The notes under the pieces were generated by a model, which saw only the letters and a program-made list of their open reading frames with translations, had not been told where the DNA came from and searched no databases. Below, in pieces: positions 31,116 through 60,691 of a stretch of 64,000 nt of DNA (the first letter of the stretch is position 1; every line of letters begins with the position of its first letter). The stretch lies in IMG/VR virus record IMGVR_UViG_3300023174_000040, positions 248,001-312,000 of that record. One strand, given 5' to 3'. Position numbers and translations under genes: made by a program.

Positions 31116-31772
31116 ATGAAACTTTTCTCAGAGTGGATAGTAGATAACCACCCAGAGTTTTATGAAAACTTTGAGTTCATGCCCCTGGATAGTGGTTTAT
31201 CCAGGGAAAAAACTAGTCTGTCGAGGAGATCGTCAGCATATCAAAGAACGGATATATCAGACGAAGATGCAAAAAGAATGGCCATCTCAATAGGTGATAT
31301 AGTAGATTTAGGTCCGGAAGTATCGAAGAATCAAATCGCAAAAATAGTAGAAGTAAGAAATTCTACTGTTAAGGTTCTAAATCTATATAATCAAAGATTA
31401 ACAATTATATCCATAGATGAACTATACCTAAAAAAAGATCTAATGGGCAGGGAGCTAATACCAAGAGATCAACAGCAACTGGATGCAATGGGCGCCAAAA
31501 ACCTTTGGATTAAATTATCTGAAAGACAATATAAAAAATTTGCAAGTCAATATAAAGAAAAAGAGATAGAGGATGTGATTTCAAAACAAAAAGAGATAGA
31601 TCAAAAACAAATAGATAAATTAAGATCTTGGTTTGCTGCCGCAAGTAAAGAAAAATTAGATACTCGGGCAGAAGAAGAAGATAGTAGATTAAAAGATATA
31701 TTTAAATCAGAACAACCAAGTTCAAGTCCGGCACCATTATCGAGATATGTTAAAAAGAAAGAACTACCTTGA
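31116..31772 (+). CDS. Hypothetical protein with MKLFSEW leader (putative internal head protein)
   Basis: N-terminal motif resembles T4 capsid-targeting sequence. Confidence 0.55.
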   Translation: MKLFSEWIVDNHPEFYENFEFMPLDSGLSREKTSLSRRSSAYQRTDISDEDAKRMAISIGDIVDLGPEVSKNQIAKIVEVRNSTVKVLNLYNQRLTIISIDELYLKKDLMGRELIPRDQQQLDAMGAKNLWIKLSERQYKKFASQYKEKEIEDVISKQKEIDQKQIDKLRSWFAAASKEKLDTRAEEEDSRLKDIFKSEQPSSSPAPLSRYVKKKELP

Positions 31773-32581
31773 AAAGAACTGCTTTTTGTTTTACGGGAGA
31801 AGGAGCTAGAGGAAGTATACAAGCGGGAATAGCTTTATCTCTATATGAGAGTAATATAAAACCAGAATTAACAATAGGGATCAGTTCTGGGAGTATATGC
31901 GCAGCTAGTTATGCTTATTTGGGGCCACAAGGTGTTGCAGATATGTGGTCTAATATAAAAAACATATTTGATGTTTTTGGGATTAATTACTTTCCCTGGA
32001 GAAAAACAGGGATGTTAAATCAAAAACCAATGGAAAAAATAGTTTCCAACGCATTAAAGAATACCCCAGTATGTGAAAGTATAGTTTCTAAGTTAAATAT
32101 TCATTCTGGGGAGATGATGTATGTTTCCAATAAAGGAATAACAGCAGATGAGTTTAAGGAAAATGTGCTTTCAAGCGTTGCAATTACAGGACTAGTAGAA
32201 GATAGAAACGGCTGGGTTGATGCCGGCAGTCGCCAATTAGCGCCATTAAAACAATGCATAGATTTAGGATATAACGAAATATATGTGATAATGGGCAGAC
32301 CTTTAACTCTTTCTTATTGGGAAGGCGCAAAGGGAATTTTAAAGCCATTAGAAATGGCCTTTAGAGCACTCGATATTAGTTTGTATGAGATAATGATAAG
32401 AGATATAAATCAACATTTAAATAATAATGATATAGAAATTTATTTAGTAGAACCAGATAAACTATTCTTTGATTCAGTATATTTTAATCAGTGCAAAAAT
32501 GGTGTACAGTATGGAAGAAAAGAATACACGATACATGACAAAAAATCTTTAAGAAATATTTTGCCCAAGATAGTCAATTAA
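31769..32581 (+). CDS. Patatin-like phospholipase
   Basis: GEGARG oxyanion loop, GISSG nucleophile, DAG catalytic Asp. Confidence 0.85.
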   Translation: MKRTAFCFTGEGARGSIQAGIALSLYESNIKPELTIGISSGSICAASYAYLGPQGVADMWSNIKNIFDVFGINYFPWRKTGMLNQKPMEKIVSNALKNTPVCESIVSKLNIHSGEMMYVSNKGITADEFKENVLSSVAITGLVEDRNGWVDAGSRQLAPLKQCIDLGYNEIYVIMGRPLTLSYWEGAKGILKPLEMAFRALDISLYEIMIRDINQHLNNNDIEIYLVEPDKLFFDSVYFNQCKNGVQYGRKEYTIHDKKSLRNILPKIVN

Positions 32582-33301
32582 ATCTTTAGAATCTGACAGA
32601 CCTTTATATTTTTTTTGCTCTTCTGTCATATTATTTATTGTTTTAATCAAGCTTTCTTTGTCTATATCCTCTTCATCAATCAGGTACTGTCTTAAAATAA
32701 AAAGACAAAAACCCTTATCTGGGAATCCTACGGTGACTTGTCTTTCTATTTTTATAAAAACCTTAGGTTCATTCTTGTCAAAATTTATGAATGGAAACCT
32801 TGGATGATAGTTATATTTCCTCTCATGAACCACACTCCAAAGATATCTTTCAAATATCCCAGAGTTTATTATTGCGTTAACTATTTTAGTGCTATTTTTT
32901 AAACTCATTGGAACTGGAGAATGCAACTCATCAAAAGACATGCCTATTTTTTCAGCCGGATTCCAACTACTGGGGAAGCAGACATGTCCACTAGCCATCC
33001 AATCTTTATTATTTTTTATCCTATGAATTATTAGATCTTCATCTATTTCTCTGGCTATATCGATATATTTTCTACTCTGTAGACTTATGGGGTAATTATC
33101 CAGTATGAACCTTTCGCAGGACTCATATATATCTTCAGATATGTGGTTTTCAAAAAAGAATTCTTGCTGAGATAGAGCAATTCTTTTTTCTTTTTGTATA
33201 AATTCAGAATCTTTTCTGTCTTTTTCAAAGACCTGTTCTGGGTTTATCTTCTTTAAATCAGGTAAAGTGCTAAACCCCTTAATATAAGCATGATTTACCA
33301 T
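32549..33301 (-). CDS. DUF3445 / heme-dependent oxidative N-demethylase alpha-subunit-like protein
   Basis: EDLII, HVCFPSSWNPAEKIGMSFDELHSPVP, ERYLWSV, IERQV...LFILR. Confidence 0.7.
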   Translation of the reverse strand: MVNHAYIKGFSTLPDLKKINPEQVFEKDRKDSEFIQKEKRIALSQQEFFFENHISEDIYESCERFILDNYPISLQSRKYIDIAREIDEDLIIHRIKNNKDWMASGHVCFPSSWNPAEKIGMSFDELHSPVPMSLKNSTKIVNAIINSGIFERYLWSVVHERKYNYHPRFPFINFDKNEPKVFIKIERQVTVGFPDKGFCLFILRQYLIDEEDIDKESLIKTINNMTEEQKKYKGLSDSKDLIDYLGQNIS

Positions 33302-33774
33302 GCAACTTTGGTTATCCTGTGAGGCCTCTTTAATAATTTACCATCAATTAATTTTTCTTCAGCCATCCAAATATGACAATAGCCAGAATTCTTTTCTATT
33401 CCATAGGCGACTATTCCGTTTTGATCTAATCTAAAAACTTTGAACTTTCCACGATAACCCATTAAAATTTTGTCACGTGTTTTATTTTTTAGGTTCGAAG
33501 AACCATCTTCATCTTCGTTGTCATCATCGTCTTCATCATCATATTCCTCCACCTCTGTTTTAGAAGAAGGGCTGTCAGATGTTTTCCATATTGGGCCACC
33601 ACCCAAAACTTTTATAATGTCTCCGCTTTGGAGCTCCTTCCAGTCTATTCTAGTTGCCTTGGGCTTATCTTTTTTTATTTTAAATGCAAAGCCGGCATCA
33701 CAAAATTTACATCTTCTGGCTCTTACACCATTTTCTTTTTTGCATTTATCACAAATCTTTTTTGGCATTTTCAA
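33295..33774 (-). CDS. Zinc-ribbon protein
   Basis: CDKC...RCKFC; acidic insert. Confidence 0.6.
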   Translation of the reverse strand: MKMPKKICDKCKKENGVRARRCKFCDAGFAFKIKKDKPKATRIDWKELQSGDIIKVLGGGPIWKTSDSPSSKTEVEEYDDEDDDDNEDEDGSSNLKNKTRDKILMGYRGKFKVFRLDQNGIVAYGIEKNSGYCHIWMAEEKLIDGKLLKRPHRITKVAW

Positions 33775-34052
33775 CCCTTTATTATACTATTTTTTGCGAT
33801 TACAACGCCTGTACCGTGCTCTGAGTTATAGACGTTTTTGATATCATCATCTGGCTCGCATGTCAATATCACATGGCTCTTGTGAATCAAATACTTTTCA
33901 TCTTTCGAGTATGGAATCAAGGGCATACTTGCGATTCCATTCTGGGTCATAAGGAACTTTTGGGGCTTGATGGCTACATAGAAATCATCTTTTGCCTCCA
34001 ATGCACATATGAATTCTTCTCCACTCACGAGCTTCAAAACTTTGATCTCCAT
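33771..34052 (-). CDS. Small Sm-like-fold protein common in T4-like phages
   Basis: IKVLKLVSGEEFIC...MPLIPYS...EP...NVYNSEHGTG. Confidence 0.6.
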   Translation of the reverse strand: MEIKVLKLVSGEEFICALEAKDDFYVAIKPQKFLMTQNGIASMPLIPYSKDEKYLIHKSHVILTCEPDDDIKNVYNSEHGTGVVIAKNSIIKG

Positions 34053-34276
34053 TTAATTTCTTTCTATTTAAAGTATAAATTATTCAATTCACAAATTAGA
34101 ATACACCACAATTCAATGCTTTTCAATAGCAATTGTTTTTTGTCGTAAGTCCTTATTTTAAAAGCACTTACGACAAAAAAATTATTTAATTATATTTAAA
34201 CATTAAAGTTAATCCCAATAAATCTAAATACAATAGTGTTTTATTCCAGGCTCGATTAAGATATAATAGGGAGATC

Positions 34277-34711
34277 ATGAAAATGAAAAATAAATTTACA
34301 GATTACAAAGATGTAGTTAAAATTCTTAAAAAGCATTGCCCTTTAGCGTATGAAATCAGCGTTAGAAGAGTGGCAATGGGAAGATGTCTTGATGGAGATT
34401 GTGTAAAATATAAAAAGAAATTCTTTATAAGAATTAACAGAGATCTGCCAGAAGATTCTGCTATAGACACTCTTTTACATGAATGGGCACATGCCCGTGC
34501 TTGGAATCATCTACTAGATAACTTGGATAGTCAAGACAAATTCGATGATTTTTCCCACGATGCATCATGGGGAGTTGCATATAGCGAAGTCTATAGACTA
34601 TATCAGAGATACTTTCTATTAAGCACAGATGGAATGAGTAACGTAGATGAATCAACCATGTGCAGTAAAAAAAGATATTGTAGCAGAGGAACAGATCAAG
34701 AAATAATATGA
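34277..34711 (+). CDS. Small SprT-like HExxH metalloprotease-domain protein
   Basis: DGDC...IRIN...DTLLHEWAH...HDASW. Confidence 0.65.
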   Translation: MKMKNKFTDYKDVVKILKKHCPLAYEISVRRVAMGRCLDGDCVKYKKKFFIRINRDLPEDSAIDTLLHEWAHARAWNHLLDNLDSQDKFDDFSHDASWGVAYSEVYRLYQRYFLLSTDGMSNVDESTMCSKKRYCSRGTDQEII

Positions 34712-35511
34712 ATTATTTTGTCTCGGTAGAAGATTCTTACTACCATAATTGGCAACTCGAATTATTGATAGAAAGCTTCAAGGTATTGGGTCTAGAGGAC
34801 AATCTATATATATCGGTGGCTCAGGCAGACAAAGAGTATCTTAAAAATAATAAAAATCTTTCAACACATGCCAATAAATATATTCATAAAAATATAGGCA
34901 GAGAAACAGGTATACTCAAATTAAATAAATGGGGTTCTCTTTACACTCTTATGGAGAACAACATACTAAGTTTACCCGTGACCGTACTAGATCCCGATAC
35001 AGTCATACAAAAAGATATAAAAATACAAGATAAACAATTTATATTTTCTATTGATCCTGACTTTGTTTATAATAAAAGATATGCCAAATTAATTAGACTA
35101 TCAAAAAATGAAATGGATAAATGGCTTAATCTGGGTGAAGTGTTTGTTTTTAATGAATTATCATTAAATTTCTTTAAGGATATGGCAATATTATGTCAAA
35201 TGGTGGGATTGGATCCAAACAAATATCAAGTTGATAAAGCGGCATTATTTGCAACTTTGTGCAAACATAAAGTCAGTAAAATATTAGCCAGTAATGATAT
35301 CGAAGGAAATCTAATAGAGAGTCAATTAAAAGATATAATAAGCTATAGGCATGGAGTTAATCCCATGTTTAATAAAAAACTATATAAAAGTAATGATATG
35401 AATTTCTCCATGGCATCCGATAATCCAATAAATCTTTTATCTAAAATGGACCACACCCCTTCTTTAGAGTATGTGTCCAAGATTGCAAAGAGAATTATAA
35501 ACCGAATATAA
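34708..35511 (+). CDS. Putative GT-A glycosyltransferase resembling peptidyl O-glycosyltransferases
   Basis: SVEDSYYHNWQLELLIESF, LNKWGSL, VLDPDTVI (DxD). Confidence 0.5.
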   Translation: MNYFVSVEDSYYHNWQLELLIESFKVLGLEDNLYISVAQADKEYLKNNKNLSTHANKYIHKNIGRETGILKLNKWGSLYTLMENNILSLPVTVLDPDTVIQKDIKIQDKQFIFSIDPDFVYNKRYAKLIRLSKNEMDKWLNLGEVFVFNELSLNFFKDMAILCQMVGLDPNKYQVDKAALFATLCKHKVSKILASNDIEGNLIESQLKDIISYRHGVNPMFNKKLYKSNDMNFSMASDNPINLLSKMDHTPSLEYVSKIAKRIINRI

Positions 35512-36210: not shown

Positions 36211-36294
36211 AAAATTTTGTTTCTTTCAAAAAATGGATAAAAATTTAGACTAGAGTAGTATATAATCTATAATCTTTTAATCAAGAGGAATACT

Positions 36295-36813
36295 ATGAAA
36301 ACATTTAATGAGTTTATTGAACAAAAAAATATCAACACACTAGTTGAGAGTATTGCGGGTCTTATGGTTGAGATGGACATCAATCCCGCTGAATATATTT
36401 TAGAAAATGCTCCTGAGACGGAACTTGATGAAGGTTTCATGGATAGTCTGAAGGCATTTGGTAAAAACGCCTGGAGTGCGGCCAAACAATTTGGCAAAAA
36501 TGTTTGGGACGGTGGCGGTATCAGAGGTGGTGCTGCTCAAGCAGCCGATACATTAGCCGGCCCTGCTTCGAAGTTTGATTCTGCTGCAAGAGTTTTAACT
36601 GATCTTGTGAATCAACTTCAAAAAAATCCACAAACTGCAAGTATGCCATCTTCGACCAATCCAAGACAAACAGTCGCTTCTTATCTTGGCGGAATTCTAA
36701 AGGGACTAATGAAGGAGAAAGAGAACATTCCAAAAATGCAGGATGCCCAAGTTTCTATGCCAATGGCTCCAAGAGGTCCAGGTGCTCCCGCTCCTGCCCC
36801 TGCAACTCCTTGA
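36295..36813 (+). CDS. Putative internal head protein (MKTFNEFIE leader)
   Basis: Leader close to T4 MKTYQEFIAE; GAGG RBS. Confidence 0.6.
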   Translation: MKTFNEFIEQKNINTLVESIAGLMVEMDINPAEYILENAPETELDEGFMDSLKAFGKNAWSAAKQFGKNVWDGGGIRGGAAQAADTLAGPASKFDSAARVLTDLVNQLQKNPQTASMPSSTNPRQTVASYLGGILKGLMKEKENIPKMQDAQVSMPMAPRGPGAPAPAPATP

Positions 36814-37375: not shown

Positions 37376-37406
37376 AAAATAATAGAGAGAAAACAATAGA
37401 TAAAAT

Positions 37407-37967
37407 ATGCTTAACTTCAAAACATTCTTAGAAAATCTTGAACATTCAAAAAATGATATTCACAAGATCGTTCAATACAGCGAAAAATTATTAGGTATGG
37501 TCAAACCCAAAGAGGAACTCGAAGATTGGGTTAAAGCAAAACTAACTCATACCGAGGATTATCTCAATACAGTTCTTGATTATTTAAAATACTACAAACA
37601 ACAAAATGAAGACAATAACAGAATGGCCATGGGAGATCTAAGAAGCATTCATGAAAAAGCAAAAGAAATAGAAAAAATACTTAGCAAAGAAAAAGAACTA
37701 AAAGACTGGATTAAATCAAAACTAAATTTAGCGGGTGAGTATATGGATGATGTGTTTCATCACCTGGATTATAATAAAAAAGAAGGATTCGTAAACCAGA
37801 GTATGCCAGATCCAGAAAATGAGCGTGCTCCAAAAGCAAGTGAGTATTCTGCCGATCCCTACATGAGCATAGATGACCTACCGCCCACACCATTTTCCCG
37901 ACATCGGGAAAATCTAAAATACAAGAATAAAATGAAGAAAAAAGCCGATCAACTAAAAAATAATTGA
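37407..37967 (+). CDS. Internally duplicated helical protein (MLNFKTFLE leader)
   Basis: ELEDWVKAKLTHTEDYL and ELKDWIKSKLNLAGEYM repeats. Confidence 0.6.
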   Translation: MLNFKTFLENLEHSKNDIHKIVQYSEKLLGMVKPKEELEDWVKAKLTHTEDYLNTVLDYLKYYKQQNEDNNRMAMGDLRSIHEKAKEIEKILSKEKELKDWIKSKLNLAGEYMDDVFHHLDYNKKEGFVNQSMPDPENERAPKASEYSADPYMSIDDLPPTPFSRHRENLKYKNKMKKKADQLKNN

Positions 37968-38714: not shown

Positions 38715-38996
38715 TTATTTTCCTTGATTTCCTTGATTGGATAGCTTTTTAAAAGCATTTAAGGATCTGGCCGGGTTCTTGATGAGTTCATCAATAGCCT
38801 CATCACCCTTCTTTGTGTTAAGTTTATTCCAGGCGGCCCGCCTTGTTATTAAGCTATATTTCTTAAAAACACTCTGGAGCTTCTCTGCTAACTCCATTAT
38901 GGCAGAGTTTTGACTCGTATCATCTTTATCTTTAGACCTCTTGTCAGAATCTTTCTTGGAGCTTTCTGACAAGAGGTATTCCTTATAACTTTTCAA
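38715..38996 (-). CDS. Putative internal head protein (MKSYKEYLLSE)
   Basis: Capsid-targeting-like leader. Confidence 0.55.
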   Translation of the reverse strand: MKSYKEYLLSESSKKDSDKRSKDKDDTSQNSAIMELAEKLQSVFKKYSLITRRAAWNKLNTKKGDEAIDELIKNPARSLNAFKKLSNQGNQGK

Positions 38997-39350
38997 TTAC
39001 ATGCCTTTTGGTAGATATTTTGACTCTTCTTCACCATGCATGGAATCATTCTTGTTCTCTGATTCGCTGTCTTCGACATGCTTCTTAGCAGCCATCTTGA
39101 GTTTTGGAAGATTAATATTTGAGATCAATAGTTCCATTTCTGGGTTGTTTGAAGCAATGCCTCTTAGAGCATTCATAAATCTCTGTGGGTTCTCAGCGAT
39201 TGCCATATCAACAACCTTCATCATGTGAGTGAGCTGCTCTGCTTCGCTGTTGCTGAAACTAGCGGTGCCATAGGCTGTTTTTCCAACATTCATACCTGTG
39301 ACTTCAGAAACACTATTATTATCTTTTAAATATTCTTGAAAACTTTTCAT
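38997..39350 (-). CDS. Putative internal head protein (MKSFQEYL)
   Basis: Capsid-targeting-like leader; AAGGA RBS. Confidence 0.55.
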   Translation of the reverse strand: MKSFQEYLKDNNSVSEVTGMNVGKTAYGTASFSNSEAEQLTHMMKVVDMAIAENPQRFMNALRGIASNNPEMELLISNINLPKLKMAAKKHVEDSESENKNDSMHGEEESKYLPKGM

Positions 39351-39516
39351 ATTTTTCCTTTAATTTTGTTTGTTTAACTAACACTAAAATGTATATATGT
39401 TTTTTTGAAAAATTTTTAAAGGCAAAAGTGTATATACATTTAAGGTTTTATTCAACAATATACTAAACTAGTATCGAACCTTTTTGCAAAAACAAAATTA
39501 TCTTAGGGAGAAACTA

Positions 39517-41304
39517 ATGAAGCGTAAATTAATCAATTATGATGAATTCAAGAAAATGGAGAATGAGTCAGTATCCAGAGTTGAGAAGGAGCTAATCGAA
39601 GCTGAGGAGCTTCTTGCAACAATTCTTGAAACAGAAAAACTTGAACTCATGTTCTTTAATGAGTCAGAAGTTGTTTACAAGACAGTAAACGAAGATATCG
39701 TTCGTGCCAACTATAAACTAACCAACGATAATCTTGCTCTAGAAAACATCGAAGAACTAGTAATCGATGAAGAGACAGAAAAGAATGAGTCAAAGAAACT
39801 CATCTCTGACATGATTGATAATCTTCTTGAGAATAAAGAAGAAGTCGCTTCAGAAGTTCTTAGCGAGTATCTCAATATGCCATCAGTAAGAAGAAACCTA
39901 ATTTCAGAAGGTTTCAAAGTTAAGTTAAGCAAGCCAACAGGTGCAAGAAGCAAGCTATTCCACAAGAAGCAGCCAAGAAGCCTTGTTGCCAAACGTATTC
40001 GCTCAATGATGAAAACAAAGAGAAAGCGTGCTAGCCTCAAGAACTATCTCAAGATGAAGACAGCCAGTGCCAAGCGTCGTCTCAAGAACATCACCAATCC
40101 AAGAGCCAGAATTTATGTTGTTAAGACTATGAAGGAATGGACAAGCCTAACAGAGAACGTTCTTGGTTATGTAAATCACAAAGAAATGGGCCATGTTTAC
40201 AAAGAATGCATCGTTGAACAAAACGATAAAGGTGATATCGTTGGAATCAAAGTTCCAACAGTAAGCAAAGTAAATGAAGGCAAAGTATTAAGTTTCGATT
40301 GGAAGACTCTCGACACCGAAGTCAAGGTTCTCAGAAGCAAAGGCAAATGCCTTGTAAAGAATGAAAACTTCGTCAAGAGTGTTGCTCAAATCAAGAAGTA
40401 CAACAATATTTCTGATAACAACATGCTTGAGACAAGTTTAGAGAATGCTGTTAAGAATTTTCCAGAATTAGTTTATGTCACTCAAGAAGAACTATCTTCA
40501 ATGGTTAAAGAAGCTCTTGAGACAGTTGGAGCCAGAAATTTTGATGATAATACCTGCAATTTCATTGCTGAGGGTCTACTAAGAACCGCTCACAATGCTT
40601 ATTCAGATCGTGTTAACAAAATCACAAATTTAGCTGGTGCCACAGTTTGTGAAGAGTGCGAAGACAAGTATCCAGGATTCAAAGAAGTTGCCGACAAGTT
40701 CTACAAGTATCTTGATGAATCAGCCAGTGCTGATCTCAAGGTTTTCGAAGATCTAGTTGAGGCTCTAGAGAACCTCAAAGTATTAGCCGAAAAACTTGGC
40801 GACAAAGAAGTTGTTGCTGAAGCTTCGGAACTACTCGATGAGTGCATCCTAGTTGTCAACCAAGAAGAAGAACCAGATGTTCAACTTGCTGAGTTTGTTG
40901 CCAACTACCTCAAGGATATCTATGAGAGTAATCTCGGATGCGAAGATTGGGCTGACAGTATGCCAACAATGAGTGTTAATGGGGATCACCCATCGCTTAG
41001 TGAAAAGGCAAGAAAAAGTTACAGCCCAGCTGCTGATCTTGAGGACAAGAGTGTAGTCGATAGCCCAGCTCCAGTTAGCGATGGCAAGACTATTGTAAAC
41101 GATTTAGATGATGAGATGAAAGATAATGGTTGGGGCAACGTTGGTGGTGACCACGTCTATCCATCATTAACTAATCCTTATATTCCAAATGCAATGGAAT
41201 TCACGATGAAGGGCGAAAAAGGAGTTGATAAGGATGGTGAAGATCTCGGAACAAACCAAGGTAAAGATACTTGGCCAGGTCTTCAGAATCCTTTTGCCAA
41301 ATAA
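39517..41304 (+). CDS. Prohead core/scaffold-like protein
   Basis: Glu-rich with a basic patch, highly-expressed-type codon usage, directly upstream of the prohead protease. Confidence 0.55.
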   Translation: MKRKLINYDEFKKMENESVSRVEKELIEAEELLATILETEKLELMFFNESEVVYKTVNEDIVRANYKLTNDNLALENIEELVIDEETEKNESKKLISDMIDNLLENKEEVASEVLSEYLNMPSVRRNLISEGFKVKLSKPTGARSKLFHKKQPRSLVAKRIRSMMKTKRKRASLKNYLKMKTASAKRRLKNITNPRARIYVVKTMKEWTSLTENVLGYVNHKEMGHVYKECIVEQNDKGDIVGIKVPTVSKVNEGKVLSFDWKTLDTEVKVLRSKGKCLVKNENFVKSVAQIKKYNNISDNNMLETSLENAVKNFPELVYVTQEELSSMVKEALETVGARNFDDNTCNFIAEGLLRTAHNAYSDRVNKITNLAGATVCEECEDKYPGFKEVADKFYKYLDESASADLKVFEDLVEALENLKVLAEKLGDKEVVAEASELLDECILVVNQEEEPDVQLAEFVANYLKDIYESNLGCEDWADSMPTMSVNGDHPSLSEKARKSYSPAADLEDKSVVDSPAPVSDGKTIVNDLDDEMKDNGWGNVGGDHVYPSLTNPYIPNAMEFTMKGEKGVDKDGEDLGTNQGKDTWPGLQNPFAK

Positions 41305-41322: not shown

Positions 41323-42012
41323 ATGTCAAAAGATCAAATGCTATTCGTAGATAGCTGCATGGGTGGTGGGTTCAACATGGACCTAAACGAAAGTGTCACA
41401 GATAAAGGGTTAACCAGATTCCGTGGCAAGTTCCAAGAAGCTGAAGCTATTAATAAAAACAAAAGAATATATCCTTTTGAAGTTCTCAGTGAGAACGTCA
41501 AAAAACTTAACGAATGTGTAAAGCACAGAGGTTTAATTGGTGAGTTAGATCACCCAACCGACAGCATTATACATTTTGAAAAGGCTAGCCATGTCATCAC
41601 CAAGCTTTGGTGGGACGGCAATGTCCTCATGGGCGAAGGCGAAATACTCAACACACCTCACGGAAAAATACTGAGAAGTCTTTTGAACGACGGTGTTAGA
41701 GTTGGCATTAGCAGCAGAGGCGTTGGTAATGGAAAAGTAAATGAAAATGGAGTATTAGTTATCGGTGAAAGTTATAAACTTATAACATTCGACGCAGTAG
41801 CTGATCCTAGCACTTTCGCAGCTTTTCAAGAGAAGGTTACTGATAAGAAGGATAAGAAAGAAAGTGTAGAAATTTCTTCTGCGGTGGAAGAAATTCCTGC
41901 AAAAAATGAAAGCAGCAGCATATATACTGTTAATAAAGAAGCGTTAATTGCTTGTTTAGGAACAATAATCGAAAATTCAACCAATTCATTAAAGCGAGGT
42001 TTAGGCTCATGA
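41323..42012 (+). CDS. gp21: Prohead core protease (T4 gp21-like)
   Basis: NKNKRIYP, IGELDHP, VGISSRGVG, ITFDAVADPS. Confidence 0.92.
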   Translation: MSKDQMLFVDSCMGGGFNMDLNESVTDKGLTRFRGKFQEAEAINKNKRIYPFEVLSENVKKLNECVKHRGLIGELDHPTDSIIHFEKASHVITKLWWDGNVLMGEGEILNTPHGKILRSLLNDGVRVGISSRGVGNGKVNENGVLVIGESYKLITFDAVADPSTFAAFQEKVTDKKDKKESVEISSAVEEIPAKNESSSIYTVNKEALIACLGTIIENSTNSLKRGLGS

Positions 42013-42905
42013 ACAAAATTAAAGAAGCACTAGAAAAACTCTTACCTGCTGATCAGATTCAAGAGGTAAGCTCAGCAGTCGAAGAAATGTTAAAGGATGC
42101 AAAGTCAGAACTAGAGACTGAATTTAATTCCAAATTGGAGGAGGCCTACGCCGAAGTTTCCAATGAACTAAAGTCAGCTGAAAAGACAGCAGAAGAAGGT
42201 TATACCGAAGCTTATGCTATCATCTCTGAACTCAGAAATCGTCTTGAAGTTCAAGGTGAAGAGTATGAAGCAGCTCTCGAAGAGGGCTACGAAGAAGCTT
42301 ATGAAATGCTCAAAGAGGAGAGAAGCAAGAATGGTAGTCTTGAAGTTTCCCTCTATGAAGAATACGACAAGAAGCTTGCCGAGATGAAAGAGTACATCGT
42401 TGACAAAGTAGATCAATTTCTACAGTTCAAGGGTGCCGAAATCTATGAACAAGCCAAGAAGGATGTCCTTGCTGATCCAAGAACTGTCGAGCACAGGAAT
42501 GCTTTCGACAAGATTGTTGATATCACAAGTGAATATCTAAGTGACGAAGATTATGCAAGTGTCAGTTCTGCTAAGGTTGATGAAGCCAAGAAGCAGATTG
42601 ATGATCTCAAGGGCCAAATCAAGCTATTAGAGGCCAGAAGCATAAGACTATCGACAGAGAACACAAAACTAACCGAGGCTGTTCGCCACGCACAAACAGT
42701 TGTGACCGAACAAGTCAAGGCTGTAGAGAATGAAAAACAGGTAAAAACTGTTAATGAAATGAAAGAAAGAGCTGAAAAGAGCAAGAATGTAATGGGGAGA
42801 GGACAAGTAGTCGCTGGTGAAGCTGTTATTGCGGAAAATAACGGTACTCAACACGACTTTAACGATTTGCACATTTTAGCTGGTATTAAAAAGATCGAAG
42901 ACTGA
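42009..42905 (+). CDS. Prohead scaffolding protein (gp22-like)
   Basis: Long acidic coiled coil between protease and capsid; ends LAGIK. Confidence 0.75.
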   Translation: MNKIKEALEKLLPADQIQEVSSAVEEMLKDAKSELETEFNSKLEEAYAEVSNELKSAEKTAEEGYTEAYAIISELRNRLEVQGEEYEAALEEGYEEAYEMLKEERSKNGSLEVSLYEEYDKKLAEMKEYIVDKVDQFLQFKGAEIYEQAKKDVLADPRTVEHRNAFDKIVDITSEYLSDEDYASVSSAKVDEAKKQIDDLKGQIKLLEARSIRLSTENTKLTEAVRHAQTVVTEQVKAVENEKQVKTVNEMKERAEKSKNVMGRGQVVAGEAVIAENNGTQHDFNDLHILAGIKKIED

Positions 42906-42949: not shown

Positions 42950-44374
42950 ATGAATATTAATGCTAAATTTCTCAACGAAGCGAAGGAGTTAGAAGGTCGT
43001 TGGAAGAAAACCGGCTTGTTGGAGGGCATCGAAGATCGTTACGTCCGATCCACCACAGCTGTTCTTCTCGAGAACCAGAGACTCATCAATGAAGTTTCAA
43101 CCGACACAGGTGATGTTGCTCAATTCAAAAGAATCAGCATCCCACTTGTTCGCAGAGTTTACCCACAGTTGATTGCAAACAAGATCGTCTCGGTCCAGCC
43201 ATTGCTCGGACCAACCGGTCTAGTTTACTATCTCCGTTTTAGATATGGCAGCAACAAGGGTGCTGTCCGTGGAGCCGCTAAGGGCGGATTCCCAGGTGAT
43301 GACGTTAACTCACTACAGCAGTTAGCCGATGGTACAGCCAATCTCGACGTTTTCTACTCTCATCAGTTCGTTCAGAACGAGAGCCATGCTGACGCCGGTG
43401 GCACAACCACAAGTTTCACTGTTGAGCACATTCCAGTTATCGCTGGCACAATGACCGGTACAGTTTATGACGGCAACACAGTTGTCAATACTTTCGTTGT
43501 TTCAGCTGGCGGCACAATGAGTGTCACCGACGTTGGATCACCAAATCCAAAGGTAACAAGTGGTACACTTGATCCTTCAACTGGTGTCGTTAGTCTAACC
43601 TGGAACAGTGATCCAAGTGCCAACACCGTAGTTGTATCATATGAGTACAACATGGAAGGCAACAAGGATATGCCCGAGATCAATCTAGCCATCGAGAGCG
43701 AAGAGATTGCAGCCAAGACTCGTAAACTGAAGGCAGTTTGGAGCTATGAGGCTCAGCAAGATCTACGTTCACAGCACAACCTCGACGCCGAGGCTGAGCT
43801 AACTGCCGTTCTTGCTCAGGAAATCAATCTAGAAATCGACCGTGAAGTTCTAGGTGACCTCCGCAATAACGCCGGTACCGTCAGTGCTTGGGACTATAGC
43901 ACCGCCCTCGGTGATACAGTCAAGGAACGCTACGAGAGTCTATACGTTAAGGTTGTTGAAGTCAGCAACGTAATTCATCGTAAGACACTACGTGGTGGTG
44001 CCAATTGGTTAGTAACAAGTCCAGAAGTTGCTTCAGTATTCGAAACAGCCACAGCCGGTTTCGCTCCAGCTCCTTCAGAGACTTTCACTAGCTCACTCGG
44101 CATCCAGTATGTCGGAACTGTGAACAATCGTTGGAGACTCTACAAGGACCCACTGTTCCCAACAGGTCAAATCCTAATGGGATATAAGGGCGACAGCTAC
44201 ATGGACAGCGGATACTTCTACTGCCCATACGTGCCACTCACCCAGACTCCAGTAGTCCTTGATCCAGATTCCTTCACACCACGTAAGGGTCTGTTAACAA
44301 GGTATGGGAAGAAGTTGCTTAGAGAGGGAGCAAAGTTTTATGCCCGCCTCAACATAGCCAATTTTATCGTGTAA
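42950..44374 (+). CDS. gp23: Major capsid protein (T4 gp23-like)
   Basis: IPLVRRVYPQLIA...VQP, KTRKLKAVWSYEAQQDL, EINLEIDREV, YCPYVPL, TRYG. Confidence 0.97.
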   Translation: MNINAKFLNEAKELEGRWKKTGLLEGIEDRYVRSTTAVLLENQRLINEVSTDTGDVAQFKRISIPLVRRVYPQLIANKIVSVQPLLGPTGLVYYLRFRYGSNKGAVRGAAKGGFPGDDVNSLQQLADGTANLDVFYSHQFVQNESHADAGGTTTSFTVEHIPVIAGTMTGTVYDGNTVVNTFVVSAGGTMSVTDVGSPNPKVTSGTLDPSTGVVSLTWNSDPSANTVVVSYEYNMEGNKDMPEINLAIESEEIAAKTRKLKAVWSYEAQQDLRSQHNLDAEAELTAVLAQEINLEIDREVLGDLRNNAGTVSAWDYSTALGDTVKERYESLYVKVVEVSNVIHRKTLRGGANWLVTSPEVASVFETATAGFAPAPSETFTSSLGIQYVGTVNNRWRLYKDPLFPTGQILMGYKGDSYMDSGYFYCPYVPLTQTPVVLDPDSFTPRKGLLTRYGKKLLREGAKFYARLNIANFIV

Positions 44375-44508: not shown

Positions 44509-44874
44509 ATGTATCAAATTAAATGTCCTGACTGTGGCGAGGAAAGAACTGTGAAGGCTAAAAAGAAATGGATGAAGAATGAGCCTCCATTTTTAAAGAT
44601 ATGTAAAAGTTGTTGCCAGATAGGTAAAGAAAAAACTCCAGAGTGTCGTGCAAAACTTTCTGAGGCTGTAAAAGCCATTCAAACAGAAGATGTCATTAAT
44701 AAAAAGAGTCAATTTATGAGAGATCATCCTGAAATCTGGGAGAATAATCTTATTTTTGGATACTCAGCAGGATGGAATAAAGGCCTAAAGATGCCGAAAT
44801 CATCAGAAGACAAAAAACAAAAAATATCAGAGTCGATGAAAAACACACTCGAAGAGAAAAAGAAAAACAAATGA
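44509..44874 (+). CDS. Zn-ribbon/NUMOD3-like DNA-binding protein
   Basis: CPDC, CKSC, GWNKG...KQKISESMK. Confidence 0.65.
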   Translation: MYQIKCPDCGEERTVKAKKKWMKNEPPFLKICKSCCQIGKEKTPECRAKLSEAVKAIQTEDVINKKSQFMRDHPEIWENNLIFGYSAGWNKGLKMPKSSEDKKQKISESMKNTLEEKKKNK

Positions 44875-46004
44875 ATATCGAAGAATTTGAAATTAAATAC
44901 GGAGAATATGGCTTTAGAGACAAAATCTCTATATTTTGCAGCACTGAAGGCTGTGAAAATCATATGTTAACAAATAAAGACTCGGCTGTCAGAAATATAA
45001 AAAAGCATGGAACATTCAAGTGCAGAACTTGTTGTTACACAGAGGACGGAAAAAAAAGAATATCAGAGTCTACATCTTATAAACGTTCGCCAGAAACATG
45101 CAGAAAAATGGCAGAAGCAAAAATAGCTTTTTATCTTACCGAGGAAGGAAAGAAACTTAAGAAGAAACTCTCTGTGCTGACGGCGGAAAACCATTCAGTA
45201 CATAAATATGATAAGTCCAAAAGAAGAGGAGTGTTTGAATCTAAAAAAACGGGCAGGAAACTTTCCTATGATTCTTCATATGAGCTCAGGCTTTGCTGGC
45301 TCTTGGACTCCGATGAGACAGTATTAGATTTTGAAACTCAACTAGGATTTCAAATAAACGGAAGAGGTAGATGTTTAGATTGTCTCGTGACTTACAAAAG
45401 TGGTAGGAAAAAAGTAATTGAAATGAAGCCTAAACAAAGAATAGATGAGTTTAAAAATCAAATAGAAGATACCAAAGAATATGCTAATCAAAATAATTGG
45501 GACTTTCAATTAATGACAGAAGACGATTTAGGAATGAACTATAAGCAGATTAGATTATGGGCAGATGATTATAGAACAGAGAATACCGGAATTGATTATC
45601 ATGAATATAGAAAAGAAAATAATAGAAAAAAAGCCAAAAAACACTATCACGAAAAAATAGCTTTAGATAAAGTTAATGTTTATTGTGAATATTGTAAAGA
45701 AAATCATTCTGTTTTAAAGAAAAGCCATGATAGTAATATAAAAAGAAACGGAAAATACATCTGCGAAAAAGAAGGTGGGCACATATCAGGAAGTAAGCCT
45801 AAACCACATTTGATTAAAGAAAATCCTTATGCAAAGGAAGGCAAAAAGCAATGTAAAAAGTGCAACGAAATTAAATTTTTTGAACTTTTTAATAAAGATA
45901 AGTCGAGAAGAGATGGATATAGAGAGTATTGCAAAGATTGCGAATCAATTAAACAAAAAGAAAAGTATAAGAAATCTAGGTCAGAGAAACCTACCGCTGA
46001 TTAA
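44871..46004 (+). mobile_element. TnsA-N-type PD-(D/E)XK endonuclease with Zn fingers; probable free-standing homing endonuclease
   Basis: YDSSYE, DCLVTY, VIEMKPK, W.FQLMTEDDL; C-terminal CKKC...CKDC. Confidence 0.75.
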
Positions 46005-46103
46005 AAATCAAAAAACGGAATCGAAACCATCAAGTACATCGGACAAAATTGGTAGAAAAATAGTTTTCAAGCATATATAAATTATCTTATTTTAGGAGTT
46101 ATT

Positions 46104-47087: not shown

Positions 47088-47108
47088 TTATCTACTAATT
47101 TAGTTCGT

Positions 47109-47179
47109 GCGGGATTGACATAACGGCCGTGTGCAAGCCTTCCAAGCTTGAAAAACGAGTTCGACTCTCGTATCCCGCT
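47109..47179 (+). tRNA. trnG: tRNA-Gly(TCC), CCA not encoded
   Basis: Acceptor GCGGGAT/ATCCCGC, D arm ACAT/GTGT, anticodon arm CAAGC-CTTCCAA-GCTTG, T arm ACGAG-TTCGACT-CTCGT. Confidence 0.93.
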
Positions 47180-47373
47180 TTTCACTTTTAGGAATTTCCA
47201 TATAAATCAAAGCAGCAAGGAATGCGGTGGCTTTCATGACCTTATAAGCCTTATACAAAACAGCGACTATAGATAAAATCTTTATTTTAGCACCTTTGTT
47301 TCTGGCACGCTCTTCGTTTAAAAAATCTAAAAAATCTCTCATATTTGCTTTGTTAAATTACACTTCTAGCCAT

Positions 47374-47838
47374 TTACGCATGAGTTGGAGTTGGTGTTGG
47401 AGTACTACGAGTTGGAGTTGGAGTAACTGTGCGAGTTGGAGTTGGAGTAACTGTGCGAGTTGGTGTTGGTGTTGGTGTTGGTGCCATGCAAACCCCGCTT
47501 ACGCAGGTATATCCTGCTGGACAAGCGTTTCCACAACTTCCGCAATTACTTTCATCGTTTGTTAAATTAACGCAAACACTATCACAGAGGGTTTCCGAGT
47601 TAGAACAATCTCCTCTTGCTTCAACAAATTCACTTGGAATAATTTGGGCTAAGTATTCTCCTCCATCAGATACCGTTATTACTTCTCCATCTTTTTTGGA
47701 AACAATCTTTTTTCCATCATAATCAACCATATTTAAAGTTCTCTGAATACTGTTTCCGTTTAATATAGCTGTATCTAATCCGCCTTCCGAGGCTAGGTTT
47801 TTGAGTAATGGGCTGAGTTCTAAATTTGAGTCTGACAT
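47374..47838 (-). CDS. Protein with STIG1/myxobacterial-type Cys-rich motif and Pro/Thr tail
   Basis: CDSVCVNLTNDESNCGSCGNACPAGYTCVSGVC then PTPT repeats. Confidence 0.7.
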   Translation of the reverse strand: MSDSNLELSPLLKNLASEGGLDTAILNGNSIQRTLNMVDYDGKKIVSKKDGEVITVSDGGEYLAQIIPSEFVEARGDCSNSETLCDSVCVNLTNDESNCGSCGNACPAGYTCVSGVCMAPTPTPTPTRTVTPTPTRTVTPTPTRSTPTPTPTHA

Positions 47839-54983: not shown

Positions 54984-54995
54984 AAAGGACAAAAC

Positions 54996-55268: not shown

Positions 55269-55278
55269 AGTAAAAAAA

Positions 55279-58200: not shown

Positions 58201-58563
58201 CCAAACATAGCAAGCGTGAACGTAAGCGGACTAAGGAACCTGAGCTACATAGACATTTCAAACAATGGCGGGACCCCGTCCCTAGAGTCGGTTTTGGCCT
58301 ATGGCTTCGGAACATGGGCGGGATACAATGGAAAGGCAAATTTCCGCATAATATACGGTTATGACAACAATATGGATATGACTGCGTGGGTGGAATTCTT
58401 TGAGTCTCTGGGCGATGGCACCGCCGGCGGAAGTAAGAATTACATCAATGCGTTGACAAGCGGATGCACGGTACAAGATGCAATCAACTATATGATAAAC
58501 AACCACGTCTCCTGGGAGATGGGCGACGTGGGATGGTATATAGAAACGGGGAGCGACTGCTAA
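55279..58563 (+). CDS. Large fibre/receptor-binding-like protein with LamG-like, beta-helix and LRR-like segments
   Basis: GDFTIE...HVAMTR...IFVNG...LREFRV; LQTLNLS/LSYIDIS LRR-like. Confidence 0.65.
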   Translation: MANLEQYTPIYIKSSGNDSTGDGSSGNPYLTAQKAFEVAYAGTGLKVLDFTEGNFGGVNLNGFSDWPSRIAVRGVDSQSSVLGGIIGASKKISIISDKTVEIGEISGGSTVLTDCKAGKVNSASISLIDSDVVGLNSSRTSCSGKAKGLGGGNILGPSRTEKVSLLLHMGGSRENIATFTDYSIDTKNIKVKGNTRIITGVYTCNGSSWPHCGYFPPPAQQSCFFDGNGSYLETKEEKDFGFGRGDFTIESKIYIPYDSWGTTGTIFNLGGGIKLRTYGAESLVIDGETYNWYPGDNIPIDQEVHVAMTRKGGEFNIFVNGERVFQLTGVSVDLGRSNILRIGAGEEDGMEAFYLYGYLREFRVVKGRAVYSGEFLPPTEALSVIVEDHPSLDSRTLYFNNIANDNSWTNLNNWWSDEACTVHSSSLPGEHDKVVVRGAAFDGINVTVRKLTMFADGNIPSHTSFKNSTINARNGIFAITTGAGYVESGGSGFASTCALNGNVFFFESDATQGTMSAQVDGNLTVGGCDVGVNVYVSGSVIVKGDCTNFGHVGKNLIVELGGFGNGNGAVHPTIEGNAIFIGGRGLVATADGSPSPGNWGAINGNAEFYLGAVNAGNVYGKAYFHDSSNGGTLHNGATFVSTVGGAAMNWLRDENGEGSGAFGLINGTTKIYGAGYVGGSGSFFDDVHLYDGVILTNTFKPPLIEGNIYCHDNSTLGSVACPSDVYFYDNSHGNMSYSPGLNSDWLLATYGTPDWEGWSEGQYRPINGYDPPNLRSDFYVGSCALYGNSTLGDFLVLNDLTLNGESGMTQYNVTATTGGDQGLRHGVLESGTRVEGRIICNTTGDCYPDILSLTVNAGHTGYKTFIVGGCSYVNVKINGNISTIEGSSVDLSYIINQFELTGFLNITIQPCSMDGNPTWERITSFITYQALNFITGVGSLRGMNRIGTLDLINIQNPELDVLSLKSLQTLNLSGPNIASVNVSGLRNLSYIDISNNGGTPSLESVLAYGFGTWAGYNGKANFRIIYGYDNNMDMTAWVEFFESLGDGTAGGSKNYINALTSGCTVQDAINYMINNHVSWEMGDVGWYIETGSDC

Positions 58564-59252
58564 TGAACTACTTCAAGACACCAAGCAACAAATACCTCGC
58601 CTTTATCCCTAGGTCGGGAAGCACAAGTTTCGCAAGGGCCATAGTAACCCAATTCTATCCGGAACTCCTTCCGAGGCTCGAGAAAAAACATCCTAACAAA
58701 ACGGATCCAAAGCCCCAGTTCATCTGCCCGTCCAGCAGCTTTCCTGACGGGGACGCCTATGCCCTCATAAGGGACCCGGTGGAAAGGTTCAGGAGCGGAT
58801 TTTCAAGGGCAAATTTCGGAAGGACCGTGGACGAGGTGATAGAAGACCTTTTCAAGGGCGAATGCATAATGAACGTTCACATCGAACCGCAGAGCAACAG
58901 GATAAAACACCAAAAGGACATAAAGTGCTTCAAGTTCCCAGAGGGAATAAACGCACTTTCGGAGGCACTTGGGATGACGCCACCCGAGCAGGAAAATGAA
59001 AGCGAGGACGGCGAGAAGCCGAATCTCACGCAGAAGCAAATAGACAATTTAAGAAAATACTATTTTAAGGACGTGGAACTGTATGAGAATGCGAGTGTAG
59101 AATACACACCAACCACAACAGAACCAACCACAACAGAACCAACCACAACAGAACCAACCACAACAGAACCAACCACAACAGAACCAACCACAACAGAACC
59201 AACAAACATTAATGATGAAGTGGATATGCCCAGATTATTTAAAGGAAAATAA
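58563..59252 (+). CDS. Sulfotransferase (Sulfotransfer_2-like) with PTTTE tail
   Basis: IPRSGSTS (5'-PSB), IRDPVERFRSG (3'-PB), HIEPQS, YYFKDVELY. Confidence 0.75.
   Translation: MNYFKTPSNKYLAFIPRSGSTSFARAIVTQFYPELLPRLEKKHPNKTDPKPQFICPSSSFPDGDAYALIRDPVERFRSGFSRANFGRTVDEVIEDLFKGECIMNVHIEPQSNRIKHQKDIKCFKFPEGINALSEALGMTPPEQENESEDGEKPNLTQKQIDNLRKYYFKDVELYENASVEYTPTTTEPTTTEPTTTEPTTTEPTTTEPTTTEPTNINDEVDMPRLFKGK
59109..59198 (+). repeat. Perfect 15-nt tandem repeat CCAACCACAACAGAA x6 (PTTTE)
   Basis: Read directly from sequence. Confidence 0.95.
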
Positions 59253-59254
59253 AA

Positions 59255-59545
59255 ATGAAACTACAAAATCCAATCACAATAAACATGCCCGACGTAGTGT
59301 TAAAAAATGGAAGAAAAAGAAGTATTCCTCCTTTAGTTTTAAAAGAATTAAATATTACAATAATTGATAATGAAAATCAAAAAATAGCTAAGGCATCAAT
59401 ACCTCCACTTAAAAAACAAATAGTGTTATGGGAAAATGATTCCTATACTACTGCTGGTGATTATACTCAAGCACAAGTTGAAGCAAGATTATTGGAAATA
59501 TTGGGCGATAACCCAACAGTAGTTTTAGAGAATTATTTTAAATAA
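59255..59545 (+). CDS. Small protein, paralog of 54996
   Basis: LWENDSYTTAGDYTQAQVEARLLEILG. Confidence 0.6.
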   Translation: MKLQNPITINMPDVVLKNGRKRSIPPLVLKELNITIIDNENQKIAKASIPPLKKQIVLWENDSYTTAGDYTQAQVEARLLEILGDNPTVVLENYFK

Positions 59546-59547
59546 TA

Positions 59548-60222
59548 TTAAAAATAATTATAGAGATTTATAACACCATTTTTAACAGTCAAATAATTGC
59601 AAGGTAATTCCGTCCAACTTCCGCTATTATAATAACCTGTGTGGGGTTTAGAGTTTGCATAATGCACATGTCCGCAACAAACAACATTGCAGCCTATTTT
59701 CTTCATATGTTCAATAGACTTTTTTTCTATGATCTCAGCATTTCTCATAAAAGTTTTACTACTTTTTTTTGCAAGCTTTGCAAGATAAAAACTTTTATCT
59801 ATTTTTTGTATCAATTTATAAATTTTATCAGCAAAGTAAACTAACATTGGTTGATTGGATATCACGCTATCGAATCGGTCTCCATGGAGAACAAGTATCT
59901 TTTTATCTCCACTATAAAGAATATATTCTTCTAAAAATTCCACTCCTAATAAATGAGATATAACTTCTGCTGGCCCGTCATGATTTCCTGCTACCCAAAT
60001 TATATTAACTTTTTTTGAAAGTTTTCTTATGTAAGATAAAACCCTCCAGTGACTTTTCTTTAATTTTCTAAAGTCCCAACTATCGAATAAATCTCCATTT
60101 AAAATAATAGATTTTGTAGGATTCGTTCCATCCTCAATCGTAGCAAAAAAACTTATCAATTTTTTAGCTTGACAGACATCACTGCCTAAATGAATATCGC
60201 TTATTATAATCGCATCATTCAT
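59548..60222 (-). CDS. LpxH-like (UDP-2,3-diacylglucosamine hydrolase family) metallophosphoesterase
   Basis: SDIHLG, LNGDLFD, GNHD, LHGDRFD, CGHVH, NSGSW. Confidence 0.8.
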   Translation of the reverse strand: MNDAIIISDIHLGSDVCQAKKLISFFATIEDGTNPTKSIILNGDLFDSWDFRKLKKSHWRVLSYIRKLSKKVNIIWVAGNHDGPAEVISHLLGVEFLEEYILYSGDKKILVLHGDRFDSVISNQPMLVYFADKIYKLIQKIDKSFYLAKLAKKSSKTFMRNAEIIEKKSIEHMKKIGCNVVCCGHVHYANSKPHTGYYNSGSWTELPCNYLTVKNGVINLYNYF

Positions 60223-60283
60223 ATAAGTAGATATTAATAATTTTGTTATTTTTTATGTTTGAATTTTTAATATATAAAGTACT

Positions 60284-60691
60284 ATGAAAAATTTTAAAGA
60301 ATGGCTAATAAACGAAGAAAAAGACGCTTGTTATTATAAGGTTAAAAGTAGATATTCAGTTTTTCCATCTGCATATTCGTCAGGCGCATTGGTCCAGTGT
60401 AGAAAAAAAGGAGCCAAAAATTGGGGCAACTCAAAAAATGAAAATCTTGAAGAATCAATTTTCAATAAAGAAAAAGAACAGGGACTTCATGGTTGGTTCA
60501 GCAGAAAAACAGGTGGATGGATAGATTGTAAGGCTAGTAAAAAAGGAAAATTAGTACCTTGTGGAAGAAAAAAAACAGGCAAAGGAACAGAAAGAGAATA
60601 TCCTGCGTGCCGACCTGTTTTATCAGCCTGTAATAAAAATAAAAATAAAAAAAAATCAAGTAAAAGAATTTCATGGAAAGGCGAGAAATAG
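60284..60691 (+). CDS. Basic Cys-containing phage protein with MKNFKEWL leader
   Basis: KDACYYKVKSRYSVFPSAYSSGALVQCRKKG motif recurrent in T4-like aquatic phages. Confidence 0.6.
   Translation: MKNFKEWLINEEKDACYYKVKSRYSVFPSAYSSGALVQCRKKGAKNWGNSKNENLEESIFNKEKEQGLHGWFSRKTGGWIDCKASKKGKLVPCGRKKTGKGTEREYPACRPVLSACNKNKNKKKSSKRISWKGEK

Follow-up and report, generated by a model that had tools for sequence, protein, structure and literature searches.

A short N-terminal leader resembling the T4 capsid targeting sequence on about 24 genes of an uncultured freshwater huge phage

The shared N-terminal leader

The internal proteins (IPs) of bacteriophage T4 are directed into the head by a short N-terminal capsid targeting sequence (CTS), carried as a propeptide of 10–19 residues. 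In the T4 record both IPII and IPIII start with MKTYQEFIAE, and IPI starts with MKTFKEFTST. For IPIII the first 10 residues are enough for incorporation, targeting depending mainly on residues 4 and 7 and processing on residues 8 and 10 (PMC9026906). A leader of similar appearance recurs in the 64,000-nucleotide stretch of DNA analysed here (the window), which spans positions 248001–312000 of a single 323,267-bp IMG/VR contig (IMGVR_UViG_3300023174_000040; 35.8% G+C; CheckV completeness 64%). This contig represents part of the genome of an uncultured freshwater huge phage. The leader is probably a T4-type CTS propeptide that is carried by about 5% of the genes, is cut by a gp21-like protease after a Glu at positions 9–13, and doubles as the joint at which cargo cassettes recombine. 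Short capsid-targeting leaders are already known from T4; the strong expansion to about 24 genes is the new part, and the literature searched yielded no description of such leaders for huge phages.

The lake-phage genes share several properties with those of T4 IPI, IPII and IPIII (Mullaney and Black, 1996; PMC9026906, PMC3012670). In both cases the leader is short, with aromatic residues at positions 4 and 7, an aliphatic residue at position 8 and a Glu near position 10. The mature parts are unrelated to one another, fast-evolving and mostly small and basic, the genes act as exchangeable cassettes, and a gp21-type protease is encoded in the genome. The two systems differ in number, as three IPs are known in T4 (four leader-bearing open reading frames [ORFs] by pattern) against about 24 per 323-kb fragment here. 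In the lake phage the spacing between Met and the first aromatic position also varies, being either 2 or 3 residues, and many of the leader genes stand behind their own close-coupled ATATATA motif, unlike the genes of the T4 IPs. Packaging, established for the T4 IPs, is predicted for the lake-phage proteins. A second point of comparison is provided by SPN3US and the phiKZ-like giant phages (PMC5694885), in which many proteins are likewise loaded into the head and carry propeptides that are cut after Glu by a prohead protease related to that of T4 and are thought to have a targeting role. Those propeptides, however, are mostly >100 residues long, share no common short motif and are cleaved at A/S-x-E, whereas the lake phages have a genuine capsid protein of the Gp23 family, a protease of the S77 type and a short T4-like leader.

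A genome-wide scan for the motif, as proposed in a preliminary description of this stretch, shows that its frequency at N-termini is far beyond chance. The strict form, M-[KR]-x-[FY]-x-[ED]-[FWY]-[LI], opens at 12 of the contig's start codons. Among the 453 genes of a greedy set, 11 carry it at the N-terminus, where 0.02 would be expected, and it is internal only five times in 100,667 residues. The core of the motif, [FY]-x-[ED]-[FWY]-[LI], starts at residue 4 in 15 of the 453 genes and at residue 3 in three; past residue 15 it is found 24 times, and 0.11 are expected per position. Adding weaker members by profile score gave a working list of 24 leader genes, eight of which lie in the window. 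The eight genes of the preliminary description are thus too few, and the family is less head-centred than was described: its clustering around the head module holds for eight of the 24 genes, which lie within 30 kb around the genes for protease, scaffold and capsid (binomial p = 0.001), and the other 16 are scattered. The statement that the mature parts are unrelated stands, as all-against-all BLASTP of residues 13 to the end of the 24 proteins gives no pair at E ≤ 0.01. The isoelectric point is at least 8.6 in 16 of the 24. One leader gene, at contig position 189410, contains another leader-like motif in frame at residue 81 (MNYYNEFIS; 189650–189775), which could be the trace of two fused cassettes.

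The likeness to the T4 CTS that had been pointed out holds well and extends to the residues that are functional in T4. The first aromatic residue is F or Y in all 24 leaders, W, F or Y follows three residues on in all 24, and position 8 is L or I in 23. A Glu is found within positions 9–13 in 20 of the 24 leaders but in only 120 of 432 other genes (p = 6e-8), and an [LIVF]xE ending at positions 9–14 is found in 15 of 24 against 59 of 432 (p = 1.5e-7). BLASTP comparison with the T4 IPs yields leader-to-leader alignments only, covering residues 1–7, 1–13 or 1–18 of IPI, IPII and IPIII, and a BLASTP search with the mature parts (residues 13 to the end) against the same proteins gives nothing below E = 0.16. 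Since the T-even internal proteins are themselves mutually unrelated past the leader, homology of the mature part defines single IP families and not the class.

The pattern is maintained in the protein rather than in the DNA. Seven codons are used for L or I at position 8, and TGG, TTT, TTC, TAT and TAC at position 7, with free variation at the x positions; so many codons at conserved positions point to selection at the protein level. Orthologues of the leader genes are found in the related genomes and contigs G001, G014 and L067 and in the closest public genome, the uncultured phage LR756511 (595 kb; 75% capsid-protein identity). They keep the aromatic-x-x-aromatic-aliphatic arrangement although the rest of the protein is only 27–69% identical. 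The gene at window position 36295 begins MKTFNEFIEQ and its G001 orthologue MKSFNTYLSS, with 27% identity outside the leader. Similarly, the 38715 gene, (M)KSYKEYLLSE, has an L067 orthologue with an ATG start, MKSFNEWVLTEE (47% identity outside the leader), and the L067 orthologue of the 38997 gene starts MKSFQQYIEALD (29%). In a further pair MLNFKDWLISE corresponds to MNFKEWLMKE, with 69% identity outside the leader. The leader is also modular, as the domain of the gene at contig position 209123 is found in G001 inside a longer ORF that has no leader.

Comparison with a close relative, G024, shows the leader codons as a site of gene exchange. At the locus 3' of the capsid gene the flanks are 98% and 93% identical between the two phages, and five leader genes lie between them in G024 but two here. 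The upstream region and first codons of the 46104 gene are those of one G024 gene (MKSFNEWLKEKN...), while its mature part is that of the next G024 gene (MKTFYEWLNENYPQQQ...), and the junction sits within the leader codons (GAATGG). Cargo genes beside the capsid gene have thus been exchanged through crossovers within leader codons. In a strain contig from a different lake run, 37 differences fall in 38739–39081, which covers two small leader genes, against at most about 70 in the remaining 5.3 kb of head genes. Within the 38715–38996 gene, codons 1–8 are free of the 40 strain differences listed, the first falling at codon 9. For the T-even phages, cassette exchange through the leader was reportedly proposed by Repoila and co-workers in 1994.

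Head module, leader genes and cargo

Among the head genes on the contig are those for a major capsid protein of the Gp23 family (301 bits) and a prohead protease (Peptidase_S77), with a Glu-rich scaffold-like ORF between the two; a T4-type portal gene lies just outside the window. The protease (41323..42012, + strand) is of the T4 gp21 type (Pfam 96.5 bits; phrog_207 E = 2e-49). It shares 32% identity with T4 gp21, including the catalytic His and Ser and the motifs GELDHP and SSRG, and by analogy with T4 is the presumed leader-removing enzyme. The scaffold-like ORF (42009..42905, + strand) encodes a Glu-rich coiled coil in the position of T4 gene 22, and its start is uncertain between TTG at 41952 and ATG at 42009. 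Directly 5' of the protease gene is a highly charged ORF of 606 aa (39484..41304, + strand), for which the family search gave no match and no similarity to the T4 portal was seen. The density of [LI]xE is 3.8 per 100 aa in the scaffold-like ORF and 3.0 in the 606-aa ORF, against a genome mean of 1.13. Such richness is expected for core proteins digested by a gp21-type protease, and the three-fold enrichment makes the 606-aa ORF a candidate prohead core protein.

The major capsid protein (42950..44374, + strand) belongs to the Gp23 family. It is 33% identical to T4 gp23, and 30–36% identical to the capsid proteins of cultured T4-like phages. Its N-terminus, MNINAKFLNE, contains F7-L8-x-E10 as in the leaders, and a LINE sequence at residues 45–48 (43082–43093) lies at most two alignment columns from the cleavage site of T4 gp23, with a gap adjoining. 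A megablast search with the head genes against the GenBank phage collection gave no match, and near-identical DNA is present in lake and freshwater metagenomes from at least 12 studies. In addition, a 299-nt lake metatranscriptome contig matches the capsid gene at window positions 43944–44242 with one difference, and was the only such contig in that run. It is consistent with active infection in nature, DNA carry-over being the alternative.

All eight N-termini listed in the preliminary description are present in the window at the coordinates it gave, although three of the genes need qualification. The first gene (31116..31772, + strand; 218 aa; N-terminus MKLFSEWI, MKLFSEWIVDNHPE...) is preceded by ATATATA at 31105–31111. 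The second (36295..36813, + strand; 172 aa; MKTFNEFIEQ...) has a Shine–Dalgarno-type ribosome site, and its leader is the closest match to that of T4 IPII/IPIII, with residues 1–13 aligning to residues 1–13 in BLASTP. The third (37407..37967, + strand; 186 aa; MLNFKTFLE, MLNFKTFLENLE...) is a weak match, with L at residue 2 and T at residue 6, and it scores low against the profile; L067 carries a partial relative that starts with MNFKQWLEGG. Two genes follow on the opposite strand. The one at 38715..38996 (- strand; 93 aa; pI 9.9; (M)KSYKEYLLSE...) starts with TTG directly after the stop codon of the gene upstream, and the one at 38997..39350 (- strand; 117 aa; MKSFQEYLKDNNSVSE...) has the N-terminus MKSFQEYL. 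Beyond the capsid gene, the 46104..46571 gene (+ strand; 155 aa), the leader-codon chimaera relative to G024, begins MKSFNEWLNE and continues NYPQQQ... Next, the 80-aa ORF at 47100..47342 (- strand; MRDFLDFLNEE...) matches past its leader only residues 36–61 of a 150-aa leader gene in G024, and from this alignment is probably what is left of a longer leader gene. Finally, the 60284..60691 gene (+ strand) joins the leader MKNFKEWLINE (residues 1–11) to a Cys-rich, basic DUF5872-like domain and has ATATATAA at 60270–60277.

Little could be assigned to the cargo. Pfam and PHROGs searches gave nothing convincing for seven of the eight window leader proteins, a PDB sequence search of these proteins found no solved relative, and ESM Atlas look-alikes were sub-threshold rows only. 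A hint of a KOW/SH3-like fold for the 31116 protein (TM 0.3–0.5) was too weak and was set aside. The AlphaFold2 model of the 46104 protein (pLDDT 87) places residues 4–11 of the leader in a helix, which is joined by a low-confidence linker (12–32) to a helical bundle (33–153). A Foldseek search of this model against PDB and BFVD gave no match at E ≤ 0.001; the top row, a HEPN toxin (E = 0.14, TM 0.28), is not meaningful. The homologue search for 46104 found five close relatives only (83–97% identity). The model of the 60284 protein (pLDDT 58), which likewise has a leader helix, a linker and a folded domain, was too poor for a fold search.

The domain of the 60284 protein (KDACYYKVKSRYSVFPSAYSSGALVQCRKKGAKNWG...) scores 24.8 bits against Pfam DUF5872, just under the 27.5-bit cut-off, and is further supported by phrog_727 (E = 4e-19), 558 small metagenomic homologues and 369 phage records found by tblastn. 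Among the 120 of the 558 homologues that were listed, most have the leader M-K-F-S-E-W-L-E-L-R-E or a similar one, followed by KDACY. The domain is also 50–80% identical to an internal domain of cyanomyovirus proteins of the T4-GC119 family (Syn9 gp114; annotated 'structural protein' in S-P4 and S-E7). These differ from the lake-phage protein in having the DUF5872-like domain in the middle of a leaderless protein of 390–530 aa. The possibility that the 60284 leader is simply part of the DUF5872 domain was rejected, as the cyanophage proteins carry KEEVQMEGKKDACY before the domain and not F-x-E-W-L. The T4-GC119 family has been detected by 13 peptides in purified virions of S-SM1 (Table S8, PMC3037559), and this detection is the only link from leader cargo to experimental virion data.

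Elsewhere on the contig two enzyme-like proteins have weaker leaders. An AAA_33 P-loop kinase (contig 145754–146245; L009) begins MKKFTVWLENK and its G001 orthologue MKEFKTWFEEN. A PolyA_pol/CCA-adding-type nucleotidyltransferase (contig 232139–233344; L013) begins MGKFQDYVLYKE, and the corresponding G001 enzyme of PolyA_pol type (L100:11441–12940) has the leader-like start MKSFSDFISIRE. These two may be packaged RNA-repair enzymes. A precedent for weaker leader-like N-termini on enzymes is T4 Alt, a packaged and injected ADP-ribosyltransferase with an N-terminal propeptide that is cleaved by gp21. No Alt homologue was found among the leader proteins, and the enzyme-bearing candidates are the weakest motif matches.

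Several neighbouring genes in the window were also noted. Directly 3' of the capsid gene, window positions 44509–46004 hold a 121-aa ORF and a 377-aa endonuclease-like ORF, the latter with matches to a TnsA-like N domain and to endonuclease VII/HNH. Both are missing in G024, which has a different 3.2 kb there, and the segment is probably a mobile homing-endonuclease insertion. A patatin-like phospholipase ORF (31769–32581) overlaps the end of the 31116 leader gene by 4 nt, and it is adjoined on the opposite strand by an ORF resembling a haem-dependent N-demethylase alpha subunit (32549–33301, - strand). A Cys-rich ORF of 154 aa (47374–47838, - strand) has a Stig1-like match (E = 5.5e-8), the opposite strand reading as a VGVG repeat.

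Distribution, upstream motifs and alternative readings

Scanning IMG/VR for DNA that encodes MKTFNEW gave 28 loci, almost all of them where an ORF starts. Of 26 contigs searched, 10 have a capsid gene that scores like that of this phage, and several of the remainder are small fragments, with CheckV reference genomes of about 0.5 Mb. A census counting genes with the core motif at residues 3–5 gave 12 leader genes among 934 in the complete 572-kb relative G001 and 8 among 336 in G014. The latter contig (204 kb) has leader genes and no Gp23 or S77 match; it was considered as a counter-example and rejected, because the 68 genes it has in common with this phage mark it as a fragment of the same clade that is missing the head region. 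A strict DNA pattern gives 10 hits in this contig, 12 in G024 and 6 each in G008 and LR756511. In T4 it gives four (ipII, ipIII, 61.1 and one internal site). KVP40, XacN1 and S-SSM4 have one each, and Aeh1, RB49, S-PM2, HTVC008M, Mel-JY01 and LR756508 have none. The reversed control pattern gives 0–1 hits throughout and none in G024, G008 and LR756511. Shifting the aromatic residue one position earlier produced no excess in cyanophages, the pelagiphage or T4, and a one-mismatch scan of other T4-like genomes (3–9 hits against 1–2 for the reversed control) was too noisy to interpret. On these pattern counts, the leader is a hallmark of this clade and of the T-even phages, and not of every phage with an S77 protease.

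This restricted distribution bears on an alternative in which the leader, common to late proteins, is a tag for a destination other than the capsid: another hub of phage or host, a degradation or stability signal, or an assembly outside the head. What the genes display directly is tag-like behaviour (a short, N-terminal, modular element on unrelated proteins), and a non-capsid role would sit easily with the lack of the motif in other S77-protease phages and with the weaker leaders on the AAA_33 kinase and the PolyA_pol-type nucleotidyltransferase, for which packaging is unneeded. T4 itself encodes a possible example in gp61.1, a 54-aa protein from the primase gene region (NC_000866 18966–19130), which starts with MKTFKEFIKE, a complete leader including I8 and E10. 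However, a non-capsid tag leaves unexplained the residue-by-residue match to an experimentally defined CTS, and the Glu or [LI]xE signature after the motif would be superfluous in a pure docking tag. The presence of F-L-x-E at residues 7–10 of the capsid protein, the enrichment of leader genes beside the head genes, and the occurrence of a homologous DUF5872-like domain in a cyanophage virion protein also speak for the head. A destination outside the capsid is consequently considered unlikely.

The DNA upstream of the leader genes is distinctive in its own right. ATATATA or TATATAA is found ≤20 nt upstream of 13 of the 24 leader genes but of only 14 of 432 others (p = 7e-12). The longer form ATATATAA has 54 copies on the contig, including window positions 31105–31111, 46073–46080 and 60270–60277, and 19 of these end either 1–6 or 20–23 nt before a start codon. 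The shorter spacing implies a leaderless or near-leaderless mRNA, and the longer leaves room for a Shine–Dalgarno site. The large genes behind the TATATA motif encode RCC1-repeat, tail, baseplate-wedge-like and virion-structural proteins, plus one helicase. Because structural genes stand behind it, we infer that ATATATA is a late-type promoter giving near-leaderless mRNAs. At the corresponding position G001 often has ATAAATA, which is close to the T4 late promoter consensus, TATAAATA. Two ORFs at contig 6455–10915 and 11054–12160, a 1486-aa RCC1-repeat protein and a protein of 368 aa, share an identical N-terminus, MPNIIDHIIVEIDW, and the same upstream sequence, ATATATAAAAT.

A different motif, GTTTCYYTYYGGTACGGT, has 62 copies, of which 61 are on the + strand at contig 33–184 kb (33629–184213) and one is at 217095 on the - strand. 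It stands shortly upstream of 31 of the 274 genes in the 33–184 kb region, and looks like the promoter of an early or middle class of genes, which a phage-specific RNA polymerase or sigma factor may recognise. This second abundant motif, in the form GGTACGGT, is found upstream of none of the 24 leader genes, against 32 of 432 others, and six of the seven leader genes that lie inside the GGTACGGT-rich region have the TATATA motif instead.

As many leader genes begin 2–8 nt behind ATATATA and their mRNAs may be leaderless, the first codons could be constrained by translation or transcription, being the initiation region or the initially transcribed sequence. The 13 close-coupled leader genes make up about half of all genes so placed, and three neighbouring genes at contig 188–189 kb are identical in their first 21 nt, as such a constraint would allow. 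Against this, an ordinary Shine–Dalgarno site without ATATATA is present at no fewer than five of the 24, and the other 14 genes behind a close-coupled motif have unrelated N-termini. The register to the ATG also shifts by one residue between orthologues (MLNFKDWL vs MNFKEWL), and the synonymous variation, the interchange of W, F and Y at conserved positions and the freedom of the x positions are not those of a constrained nucleotide sequence. A constraint of this kind is very improbable as the source of the leader. Least credible of all is the leader as the repeated end of a mobile gene cassette that is kept by DNA recombination or gene conversion alone and has no function in the protein, since recombination, for all that the 46104 gene is joined exactly within its leader codons relative to G024 and that the locus holds two leader genes here and five in G024 between conserved flanks, explains the spread of the leader but neither the survival of its pattern in orthologues with diverged leader DNA nor the match to the functional residues of T4. 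Cassette exchange and a protein-level function of the leader are compatible.

The preferred reading, that of a T4-type CTS propeptide, has weaknesses of its own. Core binding, cleavage, presence in the virion and injection are each inferred by analogy with T4, as is every other functional step. The scaffold-like ORF, which would be the docking partner of the leaders, has no sequence similarity to T4 gp22. Glu is missing from positions 9–13 in four of the 24 leaders, and some of the listed members are weak matches (37407, 145379/145754, 229478 and 315984). The strict motif is nearly missing from other S77-bearing T4-like genomes, with 0–1 hits each, so that protease and leader do not generally go together, and a shared origin with the T4 leader is unproven. 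Lastly, gp61.1 of T4 is to our knowledge not listed as a head protein despite its complete leader. Nevertheless, none of the alternatives accounts for the match to the T4 determinants and the Glu signature together.

Proposed role and significance

If the leader works as in T4, the shared N-terminus would be a removable propeptide of about 9–13 residues on proteins whose genes are transcribed together with the late genes. During prohead assembly, the amphipathic leader helix, with its aromatic residues at positions 4 and 7, would dock the protein on the scaffolding core, and the S77 protease, whose gene stands between the leader genes and that for the capsid protein, would then cut after a Glu located C-terminal to the aliphatic position 8. 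The mature proteins would remain packaged beside the DNA and be delivered into the host cell together with it. The DNA encoding the leader would at the same time be the crossover point for the gain, loss and exchange of cargo.

An anti-defence or takeover role of the cargo is a reasonable expectation from T4 IPI* (PMC3012670). A larger picture can be drawn only tentatively and is open to considerable doubt. In it, a cosmopolitan freshwater clade would carry a large, fast-exchanged arsenal of 20–40 injected proteins per genome of roughly 0.5 Mb, the leader codons would be the recombination joint by which the cargo set is reshuffled between strains, and the AAA_33 kinase and the CCA-adding-type nucleotidyltransferase would be delivered ready-made for repair or takeover of host RNA.

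The T4 targeting peptide has already been used for loading foreign proteins into T4 heads. Should its counterpart here be functional, this short peptide would have persisted in phages with a capsid protein only about one third identical to that of T4. The locus beside the capsid gene also illustrates clearly how, in nature, genes can be exchanged by crossovers within a signal peptide. Moreover, if the leader acts as it does in T4, the proteins injected by this uncultured clade of huge lake phages could be listed from sequence; here they would make up about 5% of the genes. Since injected proteins, among them the T4 restriction inhibitor IPI*, act before phage gene expression, such a list would be a focused source of candidates for anti-defence and takeover functions.

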